A program made the position numbers and the translations under genes. DNA of 63,735 bases, counting the filler, from Octopus bimaculoides (Eukaryota), in NCBI RefSeq assembly GCF_001194135.2. It is 10 parts of 10 records of this genome, joined end to end, with 100 filler letters (N's around TTAATTAATTAA, not from the genome) between each part and the next. Parts side by side here need not be neighbours in the genome. Positions count along the whole stretch, not along the records: positions 14,507 to 31,437 come from NC_069009.1; 9 more parts are not named here. One strand, given 5' to 3'. Position 1 is the first letter of the stretch, and each line of letters begins with the position of its first letter. A model generated the notes under the pieces. The model did no database searches and was not told the DNA's origin. It saw only the letters and a program-made list of their open reading frames with translations. Below, in pieces: positions 3,123 to 31,539 of the stretch.

Positions 3123-5210
3123 CTTTTTAAAGGAAAGCTTTATATTAAAAGGCTTTATATCAAAAAGGGTTAATTAAATGTCCGGAAACAAGCATGGGTG
3201 TTTAGGATAAGCTTATGAAAAGGCTTTAGACAAGCAAAGGGTTTAGGATAAGTTCATGAAAAGGCTTTCGACAAGCAAAGGGTTAAGCCTGCTCTGGAAT
3301 CATGAGCTTCCCCGTTTGATCTTACAGAGTGACATCTTGGGAAAATGTCTTTTTACCATAGCTACGGATCGTTCAAAGCCCTGTGGGAGAAAAAGGCCTG
3401 ATGGAAATCACACGGAAGGTCACACAGATTGTAACAGTAATTCAAAGGGTCAGTCCTGTTACGTGCTGTGTCACGCTGATTCTTTGTGTCACAATCGTGT
3501 TTTAAGGGTACGCGTGTCTGTGAAACTGCTAGACTCTTTCGTCGCTTCGACTTAGGAGACATGACTTACTCCATCGCCGCTGGACTTAGAAAAGGACAGT
3601 GTTATGCTGTTGGTGTCGGTCTCTTGGTTTACTGAACAAACTGCACAATGGATTTTATTATCATGAGCGAGGCTTGTGCAGAGCCAGTCCCACTCTCTCG
3701 CCTTTTAAACTTGTATGGTCTGGTACAACAAGTATCAAGAGATCAGTAGATATCAGGGAACAGAATTTGTATGGTGTTAGCTTTTCTTAAGTCAGCAGCT
3801 AAAAAGCCGAAGGGCCTTACTTGCTTTGGGTGACCTTCACCCGGGAGCGATTCCGTGACATACAGTTCAACCCTTAGCTGAAACTCTGACAGGTTGCTGC
3901 TTCTCGGAGTCAAAGCAGACCTGGAAACAATGGTAGGTAAGAGGTGGTTCCATACTTCCCAGAACTCCCTGGAATTCCCGAACCGGATGCAATTAAGTCA
4001 TACCCAGGAGAAGTCTGTGGAATACTTTGCCGATTACATGGTAATTCAAAGAGCACGTAATGCAGTGAATCAAACAAGTGAATAATCACCGTCGAAACCA
4101 ACGGAGATCCACTACTTTACAAAGACCTTAACGGCGTATCTTTGGTGGGATATGATCTCAGAAACAATGTGCTTGTAATCCAATGCTGTATTCATTTAGT
4201 CATTTGTCTTTGGTGTATGGTGGGGTGGTGGGGAGTCATAATTTAGAGAAAGGCATCCTGTCGAGTCGGCCCACGTAAGCTGGTGATCGATCATTTTGAC
4301 AAATGAGCCAGATATCGGATATCGGCTACGAGCACAAATACCATCGTTCATTCCAGATCAAATGTGCACAAGAATAAACAAGAATTCTAATATTTCATGA
4401 CAACCCACAAATCCCAAATACCAAGATGTTTGGTGTTTTAAGTTTCTTTTTGTTTCTGTTTCTTTGAAAAATACTTATGTAAGTCACTAAAGGAATTAAA
4501 GCAACAACAACAACAACAACAGCAACAACAATAACAACAACAACAACAACAGAAGCAACAACAACTACTACAACAACAAAATATTTGTCTGTCAATTCCG
4601 TATAATAGTATATATTTCATTTTGATATTTTAAATGCTTACAGCTCAGACGTGATTGTGTGACTGAGAAGTTTGCTTCGAAACCAAGTGGCTCCCAGTTT
4701 GACTCCACTACCCGGAACCTTGTGCAAGTGTCTTTTACTACAGGCCGATCAATGCCTTATGAATATGTTTGGTAAATGGAAACTCGTGTGGAAGCGCGTC
4801 GTGTAAACATACGCGTGCGTGTATGTGAGTGTATGTGTGTGTGTGTGTACTTATGCATACGTGTATCCACACACACACAGATATATATATATATATAATA
4901 ATAAAGATAATTATAAAAAGTAACAACAAAAGAATGAGACCTCGATATTAGATAGATAGAGCATTATTTATATATGTTATAATTTAGAACAAACAGCAAA
5001 AGGTTGTCATCATAATACGAGAATGTAGCGTAGCTCTTCGCGCCGACATTCGAAATTCCGAGGACTACAGGGTATTCAATTTAAAAGTTGATTCGATTGA
5101 TTAACTGTCAAAATATTGGCACTCTCTGATTGGCTCAGATTAGTTCTCTTTGACTGGCTCGCAATGCCAAATTGATTTTAGCCTTTTACAAGTGTAATGC
5201 ATTCATTCGA

Positions 5211-8555: not shown

Positions 8556-8586
<31 letters not shown>

Positions 8587-8589
8587 TAG

Positions 8590-8652
<63 letters not shown>

Positions 8653-8733
8653 TAAGTTTTACTATAACTACTACTGCTACTGTTGCCGCGTCTATAGCTG
8701 CAGTTTCTACTACTACTGTTACTACTACTACTA

Positions 8734-8797: not shown

Positions 8798-9843
8798 ACA
8801 ACAAAAGCAACAAAAGATTGTGTGCATGGTGAATGAACGGCTGACGTCCGAAAGCAGAACGAGAGCGTAGAGTAGTTAAGTTCACGGTTTTNNNNNNNNN
8901 NNNNNNNNNNNNNNNNNNNNNNNNNNNNNNNNNNNNNNNNNNNNNNNNNNNNNNNNNNNNNNNNNNNNNNNNNNNNNNNNNNNNNNNNNNNNNNNNNNNN
9001 NNNNNNNNNNNNNNNNNNNNNNNNNNNNNNNNNNNNNNNNNNNNNNNNNNNNNNNNNNNNNNNNNNNNNNNNNNNNNNNNNNNNNNNNNNNNNNNNNNNN
9101 NNNNNNNNNNNNNNNNNNNNNNNNNNNNNNNNNNNNNNNNNNNNNNNNNNNNNNNNNNNNNNNNNNNNNNNNNNNNNNNNNNNNNNNNNNNNNNNNNNNN
9201 NNNNNNNNNNNNNNNNNNNNNNNNNNNNNNNNNNNNNNNNNNNNNNNNNNNNNNNNNNNNNNNNNNNNNNNNNNNNNNNNNNNNNNNNNNNNNNNNNNNN
9301 NNNNNNNNNNNNNNNNNNNNNNNNNNNNNNNNNNNNNNNNNNNNNNNNNNNNNNNNNNNNNNNNNNNNNNNNNNNNNNNNNNNNNNNNNNNNNNNNNNNN
9401 NNNNNNNNNNNNNNNNNNNNNNNNNNNNNNNNNNNNNNNNNNNNNNNNNNNNNNNNNNNNNNNNNNNNNNNNNNNNNNNNNNNNNNNNNNNNNNNNNNNN
9501 NNNNNNNNNNNNNNNNNNNNNNNNNNNNNNNNNNNNNNNNNNNNNNNNNNNNNNNNNNNNNNNNNNNNNNNNNNNNNNNNNNNNNNNNNNNNNNNNNNNN
9601 NNNNNNNNNNNNNNNNNNNNNNNNNNNNNNNNNNNNNNNNNNNNNNNNNNNNNNNNNNNNNNNNNNNNNNNNNNNNNNNNNNNNNNNNNNNNNNNNNNNN
9701 NNNNNNNNNNNNNNNNNNNNNNNNNNNNNNNNNNNNNNNNNNNNNNNNNNNNNNNNNNNNNNNNNNNNNCACACACACACACATATTTATGTGTTCCTAT
9801 TTGCTTTTTACTTTCATTGGTTCCAGCCTGTGTATTGTCAACT

Positions 9844-9893
<50 letters not shown>

Positions 9894-10499
9894 GGTTTGT
9901 TTGCCTGTCTGCCTGCCTGTCTGTCTGCTGTCTGTCTGTCTATCTATCTATCTATCTGTCTGTCTATCTATCTTCCATATATCTGCATGCACACACATAT
10001 AGTATATCTCTGCATGTAAAAAAACCCATAAAAAAGAAAGCAATAAAACAAAGCAAAACAACAAAAAACAGCGAAGAAAAAAACAGAAAATGGTATAGAG
10101 AGATCAGGTAGATAAAAAGTACGAGGACAAATATGGAGGGAAAATAGAAAATTCTAAATTGCTGCTCAAACATGGCGATTGTCCTGGAACAAAAGCATGC
10201 CATAAATATAACTTTCAATGTAGTTGCACAACATTGTAACTTGGTGAGGGAAAACAAACAACGACTAAACTTGAGATTGTATTCAGATTAAATCTTCGCT
10301 CGTCTAAGATAGGTCTTTTTTTTATCGTGTAGTCGGAAGAGAAGGCAGTGTATATGAACTGTGTAGAGACTCCGAGACTGGCGAGTGAGATGGCGGAAGG
10401 ATTGTTCATACTGGAGTCCTGGCCTGGATGCTTACAATAGAGTGAAACTCCTCTGAATGCAGGCAATATGACAAGTGGTGTTGTCATACCAGGCGGTGA

Positions 10500-12200
10500 A
10501 TTAATACCACCCTTTTAGGCTTCGGAAGAGCGCAATGCGCTGGAACAACTATGGCAAATTATTCGGTCCAACATCGTAAACTAAAAGAAAAGCCTATTTG
10601 ATTTTAACTCAGACCGCAATGCGCTGGAACAACTGTGGCAAATTATTTGGTCCAACATCGTAAACTAAAAGAAAAGCCCATTTAACTTTAAGTGAGCACG
10701 AACACAACTTAAGCCACGAGCCCGTCTGTAGACTTATAATCCCTCCCCACTTGAAGTAAAATAGGTTTAGCAGCCCCAAAATTACTAAATCATATTAATA
10801 ATAGAATTAAGAAGCTACAAAAAGTACAGCAATGGTCAAAAAGTAACACTGTTTTAGACAAATTTAGGAATATAAAATACAAATATAGAGCTAAATTTAG
10901 ACCAATCGACAATGTGGATTTTTACCCTTCGATCGAGGTTCTTGTTGGACAAAGCAAAAAAGTTCGCCAGAAAAAATGTCACCATTGACCAAACAGATCT
11001 TGAGTTTATCATGTATGCACGAAAAACTCTCTTCTTTTGGAAGAGTTTAGCAGGAGTCAAGAATCTGAACAAGGAGAAGTATTTGATGTATCGATGGATT
11101 TGTATGATAGTACTGGCATATTTGATCTTGTAGGACCGCTTATATCAATATCTTAATATTTAAGGTTCCCTCCCATACTATGATACTGTATGAAGCATAT
11201 CCCGCAGCTGTGGTGGTCATACTTTCGATACATTTAGGAAAAATCTCATTTAGATCTCTGTATTATAATAATAAAAAATCTCACTAAAATTTATTTCTTA
11301 GACGCTTCCTAGGACCAACTCTTATACTCTTACAAGCCCTACCATAAACCCAATGAAAAAATTACGTATATACACAAGCAGTCTTGTCACCCACCGATCG
11401 ACTTTAAAAACCTTATAGACAATATTAGTAATAGGATATAATATCTTTCCTCCTTTTAGGAAATATTCGATTAGGCAACTCTCCTACAATAATAACGCCC
11501 TGGCCAACAAAATTTTTAACTAGAAGTTAACTTGCACTACGACCATAAAAAGAGAGAGGCATAAAAAAAGATTATATCGCACGATCCTCACTTTCTCTTT
11601 GAATGTTAAGACAAACATAGGTGGGAAATTCCTAGCCTTGATAGATAAGCATCTCCCGGATAGCCATAGATATAAGAAAATCTTTTGATAGGTATTTTGT
11701 GAAAGTTCCTTAAAGCTGCTGTCCCAACATGACAAACATTATTACACGTAAGTCACACGAAGCGACCAATCCAAACTGTAAATTCAGGAACACAGACACT
11801 TGTCTACTCGACCAGGCATGTATAATTAGCTCAGTTGTATACGATGTCGAGATCACTTCAGTTCTATCAAATAAAGAAGCCGAGAAGAAAAAAATATATT
11901 GGACTATGTGAATGTGACTTCAGAAAAGATAAGCCTTCTTTCTGGTACGTATAACAAGAAGAAAACCTATATGCTAGCAAGCCACATCTGCAACATGAAG
12001 GCGAGAAGTACTCCTCCCCACCACACATCATCAAGTGGAACATCGTTGAGCGATCTACATACAATAATGGGTCACGGAGATGCAGGATTTGTAAAGCCGA
12101 AATAGCTCATATCCATCTTAAACTGAAGAACTCCACCGATCCATTGAAAACGGGGTCAGAGATTTTCACAAGATGCAAACATCTCAGCATTTTTTGTTAT
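10500..12200 (+). mobile_element. Decayed Penelope-like retroelement (Neptune-like): RT + Cys linker + GIY-YIG endonuclease
   Basis: Frame-broken motifs in the expected order: [132 protein letters not shown]. Confidence 0.85.
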
Positions 12201-24604: not shown

Positions 24605-25058
24605 CGATGTTGTTTGTAAATAACAGAATTATTTAAAACCTCCGCCCATTCTATANNNNNNNNNNNNNNNNNNNNNNNNNNNNNNNNNNNNNNNNNNNNN
24701 NNNNNNNNNNNNNNNNNNNNNNNNNNNNNNNNNNNNNNNNNNNNNNNNNNNNNNNNNNNNNNNNNNNNNNNNNNNNNNNNNNNNNNNNNNNNNNNNNNNN
24801 NNNNNNNNNNNNNNNNNNNNNNNNNNNNNNNNNNNNNNNNNNNNNNNNNNNNNNNNNNNNNNNNNNNNNNNNNNNNNNNNNNNNNNNNNNNNNNNNNNNN
24901 NNNNNNNNNNNNNNNNNNNNNNNNNNNNNNNNNNNNNNNNNNNNNNNNNNNNNNNNNNNNNNNNNNNNNNNNNNNNNNNNNNNNNNNNNNNNNNNNNNNN
25001 NNNNNNNNNNNNNNNNNNNNNNNNNNNNNNNNNNNNNNNNNNNNNNNNNNNNNNNNNT

Positions 25059-25348
25059 GGGCGTTGTGAGTGTTTATTGAGCGAAAACACCTAAAGCTCC
25101 ACGAGATCCGGCAGGGGATGGTGGCGAACCCTGCTGTACTCTTTCACCACAACTTTCTCTCACTCTTACTTCCTGTTTCTGTCAGCCTTGTTACACTCTG
25201 TGTCACGCTGAATATCCCCCGAGAACTACGTTAAGGGTACACATGTCTGTGGAGTGCTCAGCCACTTGCACGTTAATTTCACGAGCAGGTTGTTCCGTTG
25301 ATTGGATCAACTGGAACCCTCGTCGTCGTAAGCGATGGAGTGCCAACA
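25059..25348 (+). mobile_element. SINE family B (5' end in gap)
   Basis: Near-identical to 5283-5595. Confidence 0.85.
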
Positions 25349-25649
25349 AATATATATATATATATATATGTTGTGCATTGGTGTGTGACGAGAAGTTTGT
25401 TACCCAACTACATGGGCTCGAATTCAGTCCTACTGTATCAATCATGGGACAAATGTCTTTTTTTATATTCTTGGTGCTTTGGTAGAAATTGTTACTTGCC
25501 AAAATTCAATAATAGCAAAGAAGTAGTTTTAACTATTGGTTCTTTAGGTAGCGCTGCTATGCTACTTCCGGTAGAAAGAACTGCAAACTCTGTTTTCGGA
25601 TTGGCCTTAGGTAACCACTAAATTTGTAATATTGGTTTTAAAACTTTGA

Positions 25650-25830
25650 CATAAGGCCAGAAAGTTTGTGGGGAGGGGCTAAGTTGATTTCATTGAGTCC
25701 AGTGCTCAACAAATACTTATTCTATCGACCCTGGAAGGATGAAAGGCAAAGTTGACCTCACCAGAATTTGAACTAAGAGCATATAGACTGCCAATATGCC
25801 ACGAAACATTTTGTCTGTTATGCTAACGAT
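25650..25830 (-). mobile_element. SINE family C
   Basis: TTCTATCGACCCTGGAAGGATGAAAGGCAAAGTTGACC, reverse complement of the family core. Confidence 0.7.
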
Positions 25831-26109
25831 TTTCCGCAAGTAAATATTAAAAGTTTCTCTTGTTAGTCATGCTCTGGACATCAGCTTTCGTTTTTCAAAA
25901 CTATTTTACAGATCGCGACCGGTTCACTGACAGAATTCAGTGCTGAATTTTACAGATTATGGATGTTCTAAAGTTGTTGCCCTGTTTGTTCGCGTTGTGT
26001 TTTTGTAAGTTTTCTTCCGTTTTTGTTTTTTAGAGTCTTTTTTTTTTTTTTTTTTTTGCTAAGATTTATTATTTTTCTAAGAATAATTGTCACATATCAT
26101 TTACATTAA

Positions 26110-26327
26110 CCCTTTAGTGTTCAAATTAATGTCAAAAGTAATCCTTATTCATGTACACTTTAAAAAATTAATCTGGTATTATCTTGTTACTTCAAGATTT
26201 GAGAGATGTAAATATTTATTTTTAGAATGACATTGCAGGGTAGATGTGAGATACTGGTTCTGGCCAGTTTGGGCATAAAATGAGTAGAATATTTGGGCTG
26301 GATATAGCCGGTTTAAACACTAAAGGG
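26110..26327. mobile_element. piggyBac-like MITE
   Basis: TTAA|CCCTTTAGTGTT ... AACACTAAAGGG|TTAA: perfect 12-bp TIRs with a TTAA target duplication. Confidence 0.85.
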
Positions 26328-27799
26328 TTAAATTGTGAGCAATATTCTCCCACTAGTTTTTCATTTTTGTTTTTATAATATGTTATGNNNNNNNNNNNNN
26401 NNNNNNNNNNNNNNNNNNNNNNNNNNNNNNNNNNNNNNNNNNNNNNNNNNNNNNNNNNNNNNNNNNNNNNNNNNNNNNNNNNNNNNNNNNNNNNNNNNNN
26501 NNNNNNNNNNNNNNNNNNNNNNNNNNNNNNNNNNNNNNNNNNNNNNNNNNNNNNNNNNNNNNNNNNNNNNNNNNNNNNNNNNNNNNNNNNNNNNNNNNNN
26601 NNNNNNNNNNNNNNNNNNNNNNNNNNNNNNNNNNNNNNNNNNNNNNNNNNNNNNNNNNNNNNNNNNNNNNNNNNNNNNNNNNNNNNNNNNNNNNNNNNNN
26701 NNNNNNNNNNNNNNNNNNNNNNNNNNNNNNNNNNNNNNNNNNNNNNNNNNNNNNNNNNNNNNNNNNNNNNNNNNNNNNNNNNNNNNNNNNNNNNNNNNNN
26801 NNNNNNNNNNNNNNNNNNNNNNNNNNNNNNNNNNNNNNNNNNNNNNNNNNNNNNNNNNNNNNNNNNNNNNNNNNNNNNNNNNNNNNNNNNNNNNNNNNNN
26901 NNNNNNNNNNNNNNNNNNNNNNNNNNNNNNNNNNNNNNNNNNNNNNNNNNNNNNNNNNNNNNNNNNNNNNNNNNNNNNNNNNNNNNNNNNNNNNNNNNNN
27001 NNNNNNNNNNNNNNNNNNNNNNNNNNNNNNNNNNNNNNNNNNNNNNNNNNNNNNNNNNNNNNNNNNNNNNNNNNNNNNNNTATTCCGACCAGGCAGTTCA
27101 CTAACACAACTCAGTCACTGATAGTGACTGTTCTTTAGATAAAACTACAGCTTTGAATCTGCTCAGGTTTATCTTTCTCTGGAGTTTCCCATTGATGAAG
27201 GCTAATGAGCCAGAATCACTCATCGGGGAATCCACTAGTACAGTGGTTTTCAACCGGGGTCAATATAGCAGCTGGGGGTCCATATAAGATTTTGATGTTA
27301 CAATTTATGTATAGTTAAGGGTACACGTGTCTGAGGAGTGCTCAACCACTTGCATGTTAATTTCACGAGCAGGCTGTTCCGTTGATCGGATCAACTGAAA
27401 CCCTCATCGTCATAAGCAATGGAGTGCCAACAACAACAACATTCACACTCACAAACATAGATGCATGTGTGATTTGATTAATTCCGTTGCATTTGCTAGT
27501 TCGTAATGGATGGTGTTTCCACAGTGATGTAATTTGCTTGAAGTCCACCACAAAAGCATGTCTATGCTTCTTGATGTGTTGCACAATGTTAGTAAACAAA
27601 AGGCTCGTTTATACGGTGTCATTTGTTTCCAGTTCATTGTGTAAAACATGTCCAGGCTGTTTGCTATTCTATAGACTGGAATAAGATAGCTTTGTTTGGA
27701 AACAGATGGAGGTTAGTGACAGGAAGAGCATCCTACTGGTGGAAATGAAAACTCTGATCCATTCAAGCTTGGAAAAGTAGGCGTTATAACAATGATGAT

Positions 27800-28022
27800 C
27801 TTTTGCCGTGAAGAATTTGTAGTCAAATGAACGAATCCCAATATTTATTTATTTTAAGACTGGTACTTATTCTGTTGGTCTCTTTTCCAGAGCCACTAAG
27901 TAATAGGGACGTAGACACACCAGAACGAGTCAGGCCGAGGCTATAGTAGAAGACACTTGCCCAAGGTGCCGCATAGTGGGACTGAACCCAGGACCATGAA
28001 ATTGAGAAGCAAACTTCTTACC
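27800..28022 (-). mobile_element. SINE family A remnant abutting the exon acceptor
   Basis: GGGACTGAACCCAGGACCATG...AAGCAAACTTCTTACC is the reverse complement of the SINE head. Confidence 0.75.
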
Positions 28023-28039
28023 TGATTTCTTTATTTCAG

Positions 28040-28288
28040 AAATTGTTGAGCTCCAGAAGAGTACCACTCTTTATATCAATTTCCCAAATATGGAAAGACC
28101 AGTGGAGTGGAAATGTAAAAATTATACATACGAATGCGACAAGACGTGCGCTAGCACCACTGAATTTCAAGTGACCCAGAGTGGGAATGATTCCACTCTT
28201 TGGATTCGAGACGTTACGAATGAATGTTTGTCTTGGACATTTTATGACAACAACAACAACTTTGGAAAATTTGATTTGAAGACAAATG
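28040..28288 (+). CDS. Internal exon (phase 1-1, 249 nt) encoding a divergent Ig-like ectodomain, copy 1
   Basis: TTTCTTTATTTCAG| acceptor and G|GTAAGG donor; stop-free IVELQKSTTLYINFPNMERPVEWKCKNYTYECDKTCASTTEFQVTQSGNDSTLWIRDVTNECLSWTFYDNNNNFGKFDLKTN; C-strand-like W, STLxIxxV E-strand-like motif, N-glycosylation sequons NYT and NDS; paralogous exon at 30479. Confidence 0.75.
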
Positions 28289-28321
28289 GTAAGGAAATGA
28301 TTTATTATAACAACAACAATA

Positions 28322-28356
<35 letters not shown>

Positions 28357-28576
28357 AATAATAAGATAAATACATAACAAAAACAGCAGAAGTAACATAT
28401 ATATATATATGACATACAGAAAATAGCACAAGTAGGCACCACACACATCCTACGTAAAAACACTTTCAGTACAATAAAAATAAGAGCATCATAACAAACC
28501 ACAGCACATACCCAAGGGACGCAGAGCTGCGCTCGGTAGTGCAGTGAAAGTACGTGATAATAATAAGACTACTGGA

Positions 28577-28740
28577 TAATAATAATAATCCTTTCTACTA
28601 TAGGTACAGGACCTGAAATTTTGAGGGAGGGAAATACTCAATTACATTGACCCCAGTGTTTCACTGGTACTTGATTTATTGATCCCGAAAAGGATGAAAA
28701 GCAATGTCGACTTTGACGGAATTTGAACTCAAAATGGCAT
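28577..28740 (-). mobile_element. SINE family C downstream of exon copy 1
   Basis: Family core in reverse; a counterpart lies downstream of exon copy 2. Confidence 0.7.
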
Positions 28741-29899
28741 CTCAAAACGAGAACTGTTCCTGTTATGGTGGGGGCCCTAGGTATGTTAAAAAAGGGGATG
28801 TCAGAAACATGTAGATAATATCGCAGGAGAACCATGTCTCAGAGAAATCCAAAAGATTGTGCTGACAAGTACCGGCCGCAACTTTACAAAAACCCAATCA
28901 GTTTAAGTTCAATTATTTATCGTCTGCTTGCTTAAAAACTTATATTTCTTCGTAAAGTTTGGATTCGCCAGAAACAAGCTGCCCAAAAACGATGTGCAGA
29001 TATGAAGCACGGATTGGAGAGAAACAGCGAGAAGGTATAGCAAAACGAGAGAAAAGAAAACATTGACAGATATGCGAGAAAAGGAAGACGAACATCAAGA
29101 ATATTTAAAGGAAGCTAAACTATGAATGCTATAAAAATGCAAATCCTTTCTTTCTTAACTAGGTCCCCTTAATTTTTTCCATTCCATTCAATTTCCATGG
29201 ATCCCACTAATAATATATTATTGTGACAGGAAGTGAAATAACTTTAAATAATGAAAGTAAAAACACANNNNNNNNNNTTGGTGTTTCCCATTGATGAAGG
29301 CTAATGAGCCAGAAACAGAAGCATGCATCAAGGAATCTACTAGAGCAGTAGTTTTTAATAGGAGTCATACACCACACACCTGTTCAGTCAACGTCAATTT
29401 GATGGAGAGTGTTAGCTAACGTACAGCACATACAGTTGATCACTATAAACAAATCAATGGTGCCGGTCATTCAGCAAGCACTGCACACTCATATGTCTTC
29501 TTCTATCGGAGATTCTATCATACATATATATGCACACTCACATACACGCATCTGTGTTTGTTTGTGTGTGTGTGTGATTTCGTTATTTCTCTTGCATTTT
29601 CTGGTTTGTAATCAACGGCTTTCCCAACGATGCCATTTGCTTGATGTCCACCACAAATGCATGTCTTGGCTGCTTGATGTGTTGCACAATCTTAGTAAAT
29701 AAAAGGCTCATTTATGCAGCGTCATTTGTTCCCAGTTCTTTGTGTAAAACATGTCCAGGATGTTTGTTATTCTATAGACTGGGATATTATGGCCTTGTTT
29801 AGAAATAGGAGTTTGGTGACAAGGAGAGCATCCTCCTGTTGGAAATGACAACTCTGATCCCTCAAATGTGGAAAAATAGGCATTAAAACGATGATAATC

Positions 29900-30137
29900 T
29901 CTTACTCGTTTCAGCCATTAAAGTGTGGGCATACTGGGGCACTGCCTTGAAGAATTTTTAGTCGAATGAATTGACCCCAGTACTTATTTATTTTAAGCTT
30001 GCCTGGTACATATTCTATTGGTCTCTGTTGCTGAACCACTAAATTACAGGGACAAAAACACACCAACACCGATTGTCAAGGGGTGGTGGGGGACAAACAC
30101 ACACAAAGAAACTCACACATATATATGTATGTATGTG

Positions 30138-30171
<34 letters not shown>

Positions 30172-30461
30172 ATATATAACAGAAATATGTTAGAAAACAA
30201 AATAGAAACTACCCGTGGAAATTTAAGGGGAAAGTATACACATATAGATAGATAGTTAGATATAGGTATATATATACACATATATATATGTGTGTATATA
30301 TATACATACAAACACACGTCAGGCTTCTTTCAGTTTCCATTTATGAAATCCGCTCATAAGGTGTTGGTCAGCCTGTGACTATAGTAGAAGTCACTTTTCT
30401 CAAGGTTGCACAGAGTGGGACAGAACCCAGAACCATGTGGTTGGGAAGCACACTTCTCACC
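29900..30461 (-). mobile_element. SINE family A with expanded internal microsatellite, abutting the exon 2 acceptor
   Basis: Reverse complement of the full family body. Confidence 0.8.
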
Positions 30462-30478
30462 TGATTTCTTTCTTTCAG

Positions 30479-30581
30479 ATAATGGTACATTCGACGTAAG
30501 TGCAACTTTACAGATTGAAACACCAAACATGAAAAGACCAACCATTTGGAAATACAACAATTATAAATATGAATGTGACCG
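30479..30581 (+). CDS. Ig-like exon copy 2 (5' part; remainder lost in N gap 30582-30732)
   Basis: TTTCTTTCTTTCAG| acceptor, phase 1 compatible with the copy 1 donor; (D)NGTFDVSATLQIETPNMKRPTIWKYNNYKYECD aligns without gaps to copy 1 (17/33 identical). Confidence 0.7.
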
Positions 30582-30734
30582 NNNNNNNNNNNNNNNNNNN
30601 NNNNNNNNNNNNNNNNNNNNNNNNNNNNNNNNNNNNNNNNNNNNNNNNNNNNNNNNNNNNNNNNNNNNNNNNNNNNNNNNNNNNNNNNNNNNNNNNNNNN
30701 NNNNNNNNNNNNNNNNNNNNNNNNNNNNNNNNAC

Positions 30735-31020
30735 TGCCCCCTGCTCCGCAGAAATTTCAGGCCTTTTGTCTAAAGTAGAATAGAAAAGAATTATCCTTTC
30801 TACTAAAGGCACAAGGCCTGAAATTGTGGTGGTGGTGGGGGGGGGGGCTAATCGATTATATCTATCCCAGTGTCTCACTGGTACTTAATTTATCAGCCCC
30901 GAAAGGATGAAAGGCAAAGTCAACCTTGGTGGAATTGGAACTCAGAACGTAAAGATACAGAAAATGCTGGAAAGCATTTTGCCCAGCGTGATAATGATTC
31001 TGCCAGCTCACCACCTTAAT
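30735..31020 (-). mobile_element. SINE family C downstream of exon copy 2
   Basis: Full family body in reverse, ending GATTCTGCCAGCTCACCACCTTA. Confidence 0.75.
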
Positions 31021-31539
31021 AATAATAATAATGATAATATCGGGGGGTTTTCTGAAAATCCGCCCAGAGCTTTAAACGGAGAATTCTATTTTACATACAT
31101 ACGCACGTACGTACATACATATGTACGTACGTACGTACATACATACATCCGTACATGCATATATTTTTTGGCTTAAATAACTTCCCACCTATAATAAGCG
31201 CCCATGGGCAGTAATATGGAAGTTTAATAGCACTCAGTATTTCACTAATGGTATATGATGTTTTGATATATGTTCTTTTGACTCCATTATTGGAGTACCA
31301 GTATATTAAGTACCAGTGAAACACTGGGGTTGATGTAATCGACTCATCTCCTCTCCCAAAATTTCAGCTCTCTCTCTCTCTCTCTCCCACACACACACAC
31401 AGAAAGAGAGAGAAATCAACAGAAAGAGTCGAGTTTTNNNNNNNNNNNNNNNNNNNNNNNNNNNNNNNNNNNNNNNNNNNNTTAATTAATTAANNNNNNN
31501 NNNNNNNNNNNNNNNNNNNNNNNNNNNNNNNNNNNNNAT

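Follow-up and report, generated by a model that had tools for sequence, protein, structure and literature searches.

Exon and intron histories part within a tandem array of immunoglobulin-like domain exons in Octopus bimaculoides

In the X-linked red and green opsin genes and in the major histocompatibility complex (MHC) genes of class I and class II, introns are homogenised by gene conversion and exons are kept distinct. Introns are also more conserved than exons in the genes for snake venom phospholipase A2 (PLA2) and for conopeptides, where the ratio of replacement to silent divergence (dN/dS) reaches a value of about 1 or more across the mature peptide. As far as the accessible parts of these sources go, islands of divergence that persist despite gene conversion have been described (PMC3728101; PMC3924837), as have tandem paralogues with mosaic divergence (bioRxiv 10.1101/2025.10.29.685298) and coding and flanking regions that evolve in contrasting ways (bioRxiv 10.1101/282418). 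Here we analysed a stretch of 63,735 nt joined from ten parts of the Octopus bimaculoides genome (the window; all positions count along it), in which an initial annotation had found two copies of an exon that are much less alike than the introns in front of them. Both lie in the piece at 14507-31437 (NC_069009.1), which is AT-rich and repeat-rich and has nine internal assembly gaps, and they are referred to as exon 1 of unit 1 and exon 2 of unit 2 (Table 1). Five related loci were used for comparison, namely L001, L002 (the LOC106867739 locus, with the domain exons X1, X2 and X3), L003, L004 (scaffold LGKD02011600.1, LOC106871836) and L005 (O. sinensis LOC115225372). Adjacent segments of the repeat units were found to have different genealogies, on small counts, and the excess divergence of exon 1 from exon 2 is confined to the first 45 nt.

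The counts of the initial annotation were reproduced exactly. Exon 1 and exon 2 differ at 38 of 101 nt (62.4% identity), the intron segments 27532-27679 and 29635-29782 at 15 of 148 nt (89.9%), and the 62 nt before the acceptor at nine (85.5%); 17 of 33 amino acids are identical, the motifs PNMxRP, WK and NYxYECD are retained and stop codons are absent. As had been conceded, the intron segment was the best-aligning one: it is exactly the top 148-nt window of the alignment of the two introns, which as a whole contains 122 mismatches in 654 columns (81% identity), and 88 of 2000 shuffles equalled it when the selection of the top window was taken into account. Among the 62 pre-acceptor bases, 45 belong to the 3' end of a dispersed repeat resembling a short interspersed element (SINE), unrelated copies of which are likewise 80-85% identical. 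The mismatch rate of the 101 exon nt (0.376) exceeds that of the intron (0.187; z ~4.3; the z-tests and the Fisher test given below were computed by hand from the counts). When the exon is divided in two parts, 21 of the first 45 nt are identical (47%) and 42 of the 56 nt at exon positions 46-101 (75%), and the rate of 0.25 mismatches in the second part is not distinct from that of the intron (z ~1.2). The proposal that the exon diverged far faster than the intron therefore describes a real difference, but one that is smaller than it appears and restricted to the first 45 nt.

For the 33 codons of exon 1 and exon 2 that can be compared, the method of Nei and Gojobori (NG86) gave proportions of silent (pS) and replacement (pN) differences of 0.60 and 0.33, respectively, and a dN/dS of 0.35, which splits into 0.83 for codons 1-15 and 0.14 for codons 16-33. 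Because this pair offers few silent sites, full-length exons of paralogues were used in addition. Six family exons differ at 0.47 of their fourfold degenerate sites (81 of 171) and at 0.31 of their twofold degenerate sites, compared to 0.19 in the alignable introns of the same units (transitions 0.108, transversions 0.081). Silent divergence in the family exons is two to three times that of the alignable introns, and it is even along the exon (0.36, 0.35 and 0.36). Since silent sites exceed the introns in divergence, the intron is no valid neutral yardstick for its exon. Strong diversifying selection, which the initial annotation had put forward, is not supported: dN/dS is well below 1 and silent divergence is high, the very values that the initial annotation had named as speaking against its proposal. 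Codons with changes at two or three bases, which had been read as a further signal, number 11 of 33 and agree with the random expectation (2226 of 5000 random placements of 37 differences).

The histories of exons and introns were compared in a quartet consisting of unit 1, unit 2, L002-X1 and L002-X2. Informative intron sites support grouping by gene at five sites and by position at one, exon sites support grouping by gene at two and by position at eight, and the contrast has a two-sided p of ~0.035 in a Fisher test on these small counts. Within LOC106867739 itself, the introns preceding X1 and X2 are 87% identical and the exons about 69%. From nt 46 to 101, exon 2 is identical to L002-X2 at 51 of 56 positions, as against 42 of 56 for exon 1, and exon 2 and L002-X2 share a Tyr in place of Cys25 that occurs in no other of 39 aligned domains; the intron of exon 2 carries a block of ~350 nt that is common only to the introns of unit 1, unit 2 and L001. 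The L001 paralogue is a clear mosaic with respect to unit 1. Identity is 92% in the 113 nt before the exon, drops to 28 of 45 (62%) in the first 45 exon nt, reaches 203 of 204 (99.5%) in the rest of the exon from nt 46 and is 54 of 57 (95%) in the 3' intron. Silent differences between the two amount to four of eight in the first 15 codons and none of 62 beyond. A maximum chi-square analysis placed the divergent window at 28043-28078, and none of 300 shuffles reached the observed value. L001 is unlikely to be an allelic haplotig of the window, with flanks that are 80-92% identical and contain large indels and an inverted segment.

We consider it probable that gene conversion homogenised the introns around old domain exons whose A'-B segment evolves fast. 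The window would hold consecutive domain exons of types d1 and d2 of one gene, which would be old, position-specific duplicates with silent sites near saturation, preceded by introns that look younger. Repeat units, both within the gene and between neighbours in a cluster, would exchange sequence by gene conversion or unequal crossing-over, and the tracts may even out the non-coding DNA and, for some pairs, also the conserved two-thirds at the 3' side of the exon. They would stop at, or not be retained across, the first ~45 exon nt, an island comprising the A' strand, the A'-B turn and the outward residues of strand B that gains replacements about four times faster than the remainder of the domain. 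Conversion restricted to the introns, or exon swapping among paralogues, had been listed as alternatives by the initial annotation, and both fit the gap between silent and intron divergence, the discordant trees and the mosaic of L001. We infer conversion as the cause of the discordance, and likewise the reason why the island would escape it, from sequence comparison. The mosaic patterns would be of the kind seen in interlocus and intragenic gene conversion, as far as the accessible text of the respective reports shows (PMC3924837; PMC3728101; bioRxiv 10.1101/2025.10.29.685298).

Several points weigh against homogenisation by conversion. The introns of units 1 and 2 are 0.78-0.81 identical, which is no higher than the 0.75-0.82 between genes, and they group by gene solely via the ~350-nt block, part of which is possibly ancestral. 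The five loci, together about 95 kb, yield small counts of informative sites, and the intron alignments were built from local matches with a possible bias to conserved parts. Between exon 1 and exon 2, unambiguous silent differences in conserved codons are four of 14 (0.29), not clearly apart from the intron value of 0.19-0.21. The view that the exons are older than the introns therefore leans mainly on the full-length exons of the paralogues. In O. sinensis LOC115225372, silent divergence (0.15-0.30) is about equal to intron divergence (0.15-0.22), and the discordance is accordingly not universal in the family.

The divergent island is a recurrent, fast-evolving feature of the family and not a peculiarity of the two exons in the window. 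Its identity is 0.47-0.64 in every exon pair, compared to 0.68-1.00 for the remainder of the exon. When three close pairs (unit 1/L001, unit 2/L002-X2 and X1/X2 of O. sinensis LOC115225372) were pooled, pN was 0.29 in the island and 0.07 in the remainder (p = 7e-9), corresponding to about fourfold replacement. These observations, together with an identity of 0.8-0.9 in the adjacent intron of every pair, would be expected if positive selection had made the exon, most of all codons 1-15, outpace a co-duplicated neutral intron in the manner of immune-receptor or toxin exons. Two comparisons point in the same direction, since unit 2 and L002-X2 differ by 17.5 replacement and 3.5 silent changes (NG86), with no silent ones in the 19 conserved codons scored, and the island of O. 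sinensis LOC115225372 has a pN of 0.27 and a pS of 0.17. In strand B, which spans residues 8-13 of the AlphaFold model, conserved positions take turns with variable ones, the pattern expected if side chains point inward and outward by turns, and the variable ones would be those on the outside. However, we regard this explanation as unlikely, because dN/dS is below 1 for exon 1 and exon 2 as a whole as well as in their islands, the pooled island pN of 0.29 does not exceed the island pS of 0.43, divergence at the silent sites itself surpasses that of the introns, and the multi-base codon changes do not surpass the random expectation. The amino acid entropy of the family in the island (1.88, compared to 1.47 and 1.78 elsewhere) is barely above the 1.78 of residues 34-82. 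Single pairs gave island dN/dS values of 0.45 to 1.67 with about ten silent sites each. Replacements in the island accumulate at roughly the silent rate, which fits relaxed constraint or, possibly, some diversifying selection. The family might constitute a cell-surface recognition repertoire, either immune or neuronal and serving self-recognition, in which the A'-B segment is a specificity patch that selection keeps different between domains and paralogues amid conversion of all that surrounds it, a suggestion to which we attach little credence. If it were true, the patch would have a role comparable to that of the A/A' strand epitopes of Dscam Ig2 and Ig3 or of the peptide-binding residues of MHC molecules.

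A rather improbable alternative is that the introns are alike without any homogenisation, through purifying selection on intronic functions such as splicing enhancers on which micro-exons and a regulated use of domain exons would depend. Across genes, the 17-28 nt closest to the exon are indeed invariant: the final 17 nt are identical at all positions among unit 1, L001-X, L002-X1 and L002-X2 and at 16 of 17 in unit 2, and the acceptor pattern occurs only twice in the window (28017-28039 and 30456-30478). Intron conservation is highest on either side of the micro-exon (for example, 85% over 514 nt in L005 and 86% in L002), and O. sinensis LOC115225115 has isoforms, numbered to at least X12, that include a pair differing by a 13-aa linker of micro-exon size. 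Splicing constraint near exons and micro-exons clearly exists and may add to the intron similarity. However, the similarity also covers a SINE-derived segment and the ~350-nt block, which is absent from most introns of the family, and constraint leaves both the discordance of exon and intron trees and the unit 1-L001 mosaic unexplained. In the three pairs among unit 1, unit 2 and L001, the segment 27532-27679 within the block is 0.90, 0.89 and 0.86 identical, and the extra conservation of the block over the rest of the intron is slight and marginal. No further copies of the block were found in the ~95 kb of family loci, apart from weak counterparts of its final ~40-80 nt in L002 introns. It contains no conserved open reading frame on either strand, the frame being open in unit 1 alone and broken in unit 2 and L001, and searches for an Rfam match or covariation were negative, with an RNAalifold covariation term of +0.68 that gives no support.

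Independent insertion of the same young transposable element or elements upstream of two old exons, which the initial annotation had considered as a full account of the intron similarity, is highly improbable. The segment in front of the acceptor is a dispersed SINE-like repeat whose unrelated copies (80-85%) are as similar as the copies within the units (81%), and the insertion upstream of the ~350-nt block is a dispersed repeat as well. However, the introns of the two units run colinear all the way between unit start and acceptor, although the old shared SINE makes up about a quarter of the intron, and the segment 27532-27679 has no other copy in the related loci, compared to about 15 copies for the SINE. 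The end of the SINE lies exactly 17 nt ahead of the AG in unit 1, unit 2, L001, L002-X1, L004-X1 and L005, and its presence at the identical base in several genes and two species marks it as an old shared insertion. It occupies the matching pre-exon site in unit 2, L001, L002-X1, L004-X1 and both L005 exons. Its presence or absence was rejected as a clean phylogenetic marker, since L002-X2 retains the last ~20 nt and has therefore undergone a deletion rather than lacked the insertion. Additional copies with 70-85% identity were found in the window (18058-18244 and, inverted, 23288-23492) and in L001 (7551-7644), L002 (4327-4427 and 19991-20077), L003 (3059-3148) and L004 (1988-2069); ARAGORN detected no tRNA-like head.

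A process of local hypermutation has been suggested to act on conopeptide and snake-venom genes. That an exon-targeted mutation mechanism of this kind raised silent and replacement rates above those of the introns is the least credible explanation, because the two- to threefold excess of silent divergence and the high pS as well as pN of the island in two of the three close pairs stand against silent divergence that is even along the exon but zero of 62 outside the island in unit 1 and L001, which calls for tracts of different ancestry and not for a rate difference, against agreeing silent and intron rates in L005, and against the lack of any mechanism evident in the sequence.

Table 1. Features of the two repeat units and the intervening DNA (positions along the window).
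Feature	Position	Strand	Remarks
Unit-start intron block	27081..27261	+	follows the 39-nt micro-exon in every repeat unit
Unit-1-specific dispersed-repeat insertion	27262..27460		copies at 25230-25349 (92%), L002 3157-3272 and 23093-23204, L003 15913-15806
Shared intron block (~350 nt)	27461..27807	+	restricted to unit 1, unit 2 (at 29571-29903) and the unit of L001; includes 27532-27679
SINE-like dispersed repeat	27808..28022	+	5' part 27808-27926, 3' part 27929-28022; stops 17 nt short of the acceptor
Putative branch point, polypyrimidine tract and AG acceptor (ACTTCTTACCTGATTTCTTTATTTCAG)	28012..28039	+	near-invariant
Exon 1 (unit 1)	28040..28288	+	249 nt, phase 1-1; ag...gt boundaries, open frame; one Ig-like domain complete except strand A
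Divergent island	28040..28084	+	first 15 codons: A' strand, A'-B turn, B strand
Donor (gtaagg) followed by (ATA)n microsatellite	28289..28364	+	kept 3' of family exons; 95% identical to L001 10200-10270, 89% to L004, 82% to L002-X2; Tandem Repeats Finder (TRF) array 28307-28364
Second SINE-like dispersed repeat	28576..28734	+	downstream intron; copies at 25657-25774, 30786-30947, 31299-31370 (inverted) and many in L001-L004
Assembly gap (10 N)	29268..29277		in intron; flanks not colinear with unit 1, L001 or L002
Unit 2 intron	29278..30478	+	colinear with 27180-28039, 78-81% identity in aligned columns
Exon 2 (unit 2)	30479..30581	+	103 nt visible of expected 249; AG acceptor, open frame NGTFDVSATLQIETPNMKRPTIWKYNNYKYECD

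The domain is encoded by two exons, a micro-exon of 33-39 nt for strand A and the linker (consensus xxxYKITQSG) and the 249-nt exon, as seen when LOC106867739 was mapped on its locus, where these pairs are used in series. The sites of the micro-exons are 11065-11103 in L001, 10341-10379, 12050-12088 and 13240-13272 in L002, and 9269-9304, 11624-11662 and 12613-12651 in L005, and their flanks are strongly conserved (ttttacag|...|gtaaat). A search of the window with the micro-exon pattern found none, and the expected sites fall in assembly gaps, that of unit 1 inside the gap 26388-27080. Homologues of the unit-start block with 78-87% identity are present at 29278-29366 in the window, at 8581-8706 and 11235-11360 in L001 and at 10497-10734 and 12216-12398 in L002. 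At the place of the unit-1-specific insertion, unit 2 and L001 carry a different sequence that is common to both. The intron of unit 2 consists of the unit start, an insert of its own (29367-29565), the shared block and a SINE-like copy (29897-30461) with an expanded internal microsatellite (~30065-30340). Sub-threshold Rfam matches to microRNA families (mir-297, mir-3149, mir-466 and others; 30093-30315 and 31083-31166) are low-complexity artefacts on TA, CA and TACG microsatellites. If exon 2 is 249 nt long, its missing 146 nt (to ~30727) fall wholly in the gap 30582-30732. A candidate third repeat unit upstream (25230-25349, 92% identical to 27314-27433) proved to be a dispersed repeat instead, and neither a third exon nor a further acceptor signature was found in the window.

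The 10-N gap ahead of unit 2 is intronic, and no reading frame therefore crosses it. To its right, the sequence begins at the equivalent of unit 1 position 27179, and at least ~100 nt of the unit start are hidden. To its left, 29145-29256 (112 nt) matches L001 10751-10864 with 85% identity in inverted orientation, which could reflect a local inversion, a transposable element inserted both ways or a contig end mis-oriented at the gap. The two sides of the gap are not continuous, since DNA that is present between both landmarks in other loci is absent from the window. The true gap is probably several hundred bases long, and the 39-nt micro-exon of unit 2 is probably hidden in it as well. The segments compared above all lie inside the uninterrupted stretches 27081-29267 and 29278-30581, so that the counts are unaffected by the gap.

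The AlphaFold model of exon 1, obtained with a 28-sequence family alignment from which the L001 translation was absent, has seven strands and a mean predicted local distance difference test (pLDDT) score of 96.8. The top 50 listed PDB matches from Foldseek are all immunoglobulin (Ig) domains (probability 1.00, template modelling (TM) score 0.62-0.72) and include an antibody light-chain variable domain (VL), twitchin Ig26, titin I27, NCAM2 Ig1 and MyBP-C C0, which belong to the V- or I-set. The domain as modelled has an Ig-like fold. At the sequence level, Pfam I-set scored 23.6 bits for the family protein P0002 and 21.6 for P0031, with a cut-off of 23.7, a Pfam search with the exon alone returned no Ig match, and a PDB profile search reached titin, obscurin and CD2 at E = 0.3-0.9 only. 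A sub-threshold match of the exon to ELLD (PF25309, E = 0.0015) was treated as noise. The canonical Cys(B)-Trp(C)-Cys(F) core is not present in the domain, which has no Cys in strand B and W-x-F in strand F; W23 and C32 are invariant and C36 is nearly so in the family alignment.

The protein closest to exon 1 is LOC106878976 of O. bimaculoides (97% identity), the sole relative returned by a word-indexed search, and the next-nearest annotated relative of the window gene besides L001 has at most 58% protein identity (HMMER). An exhaustive HMMER search found 27 relatives at E <= 0.001, all named ones being annotated as 'uncharacterized' or 'hypothetical'. For 20 relatives the source was checked; apart from one Logan assembly, it was O. 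bimaculoides, O. sinensis, O. vulgaris or Argonauta hians. In family proteins, a signal peptide precedes a repeat of ~96 residues in one to four copies, which are followed by a transmembrane helix and a short tail. On O. bimaculoides chromosome CM046629.1, L002 lies next to L003, most of the O. sinensis members that were looked up lie on one chromosome-scale record of 21 Mb, and all listed O. vulgaris members lie on one of 34.6 Mb. Judged by its sequence, the window gene is an unannotated member of an octopod-specific, clustered family of putative type-I membrane proteins. None of six family locus names was found in the searchable literature, and the family and its architecture of micro-exons and Ig-like exons appear to be undescribed.

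Some family members differ from this general scheme. O. sinensis LOC115225115 (P0002/P0028) has four domains, of which domains 2 and 3 are nearly identical, and two of its isoforms, of 455 and 442 aa, differ by the linker segment mentioned above, which together suggest a recent internal duplication or conversion and alternative use of a micro-exon. In a subfamily comprising P0035, P0019, P0020, P0023 and P0024, to which the Argonauta protein belongs, one Ig-like domain is followed by at least one Cys-rich module of ~90 residues (...C..Y.V.A.CSLP...I.C...). In the gene model P0021, a series of C2H2 zinc fingers is joined to one family Ig-like domain, probably because neighbouring genes were merged in the annotation.

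At the beginning of the piece, 15720-15791 (+) is the cytoplasmic-tail exon (PYIWIRTRVIKWQSHKKYQNPPQA) of another family member, so that the piece reaches from the 3' end of one family gene to the domain exons of the one that follows. The surrounding 15718-15906 (189 nt) is 100% and 14777-15225 is 96.5% identical to LGKD02011600.1, with divergence after 15906. The tail-exon region of ~190 nt is present once in the window and in four tandem copies in L004 (14605-14793, 14847-14938, 15035-15225 and 15253-15319), where a gene with a Galaxin_repeat (PF24748) match at 3389-4447 lies ~5.5 kb upstream of the family gene. Tandem repeats of 19 nt form an array at 18682-19529 that extends across the gap 18925-19248, the two sides of which (18720-18924 and 19249-19453) are 100% identical over 205 nt and may be an assembly artefact; similar sequence is found at or just past the 3' end of the L002 gene (16462-16863).

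Cephalopods are known for lineage-specific expansions of surface molecules, for example protocadherins. The octopod family of divergent Ig-like domains, with its unusual design of micro-exon and domain exon, is a candidate for study among such expansions, and as a by-product of the present analysis it is possibly more useful than the divergence pattern itself. Like Ig domains of the I-set and V-set, such as titin I27, twitchin Ig26, NCAM2 Ig1 and antibody VL, the octopus domain is predicted to be a seven-strand beta-sandwich with an invariant Trp in strand C and an E strand of the form 'L-x-I-x-x-V' ahead of an aromatic F strand, and it shares with them the arrangement of one domain per symmetric phase-1 exon and a type-I membrane architecture. 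Unlike them, it has no canonical disulfide between strands B and F, but conserved C32 and C36 and a variable C25/C62 pair; sequence identity is ~15%, Pfam I-set remains just below threshold and strand A resides on a separate micro-exon. With arthropod Dscam1, the family has in common that tandem duplicated exons encode parts of Ig domains and that the N-terminal strands (A/A') are the most variable. However, a Dscam-like array of mutually exclusive exons was rejected, since annotated family proteins hold two to four such domains in series (P0031 has X1, X2 and X3). The introns, of 0.5-2.4 kb, are rich in transposable elements, with docking and selector elements not evident.

As in the toxin genes, octopus introns are more alike than exons and silent sites of the exons are more diverged than the introns, but dN/dS is 0.14-0.4 outside the first 15 codons and the product is a predicted membrane protein, not a secreted toxin. 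The closest parallel is with the opsin and MHC genes and with the islands of divergence described, in the accessible parts of the reports, in PMC3728101 and PMC3924837: tandem units have non-coding DNA as similar as or more similar than their coding DNA, intron and exon trees differ in topology, and short diverged coding islands lie between near-identical tracts. In the octopus, conversion is deduced from comparing the sequences of five loci and upkeep of the island by selection is hypothetical, and each unit is an exon for a single domain, with units compared both inside one gene and from gene to gene in an invertebrate cluster. The locus calls for no new evolutionary mechanism, but it cautions against taking an intron as a neutral clock for its own exon and adds to these systems a clean invertebrate case in which exon and intron histories separate within a tandem array.

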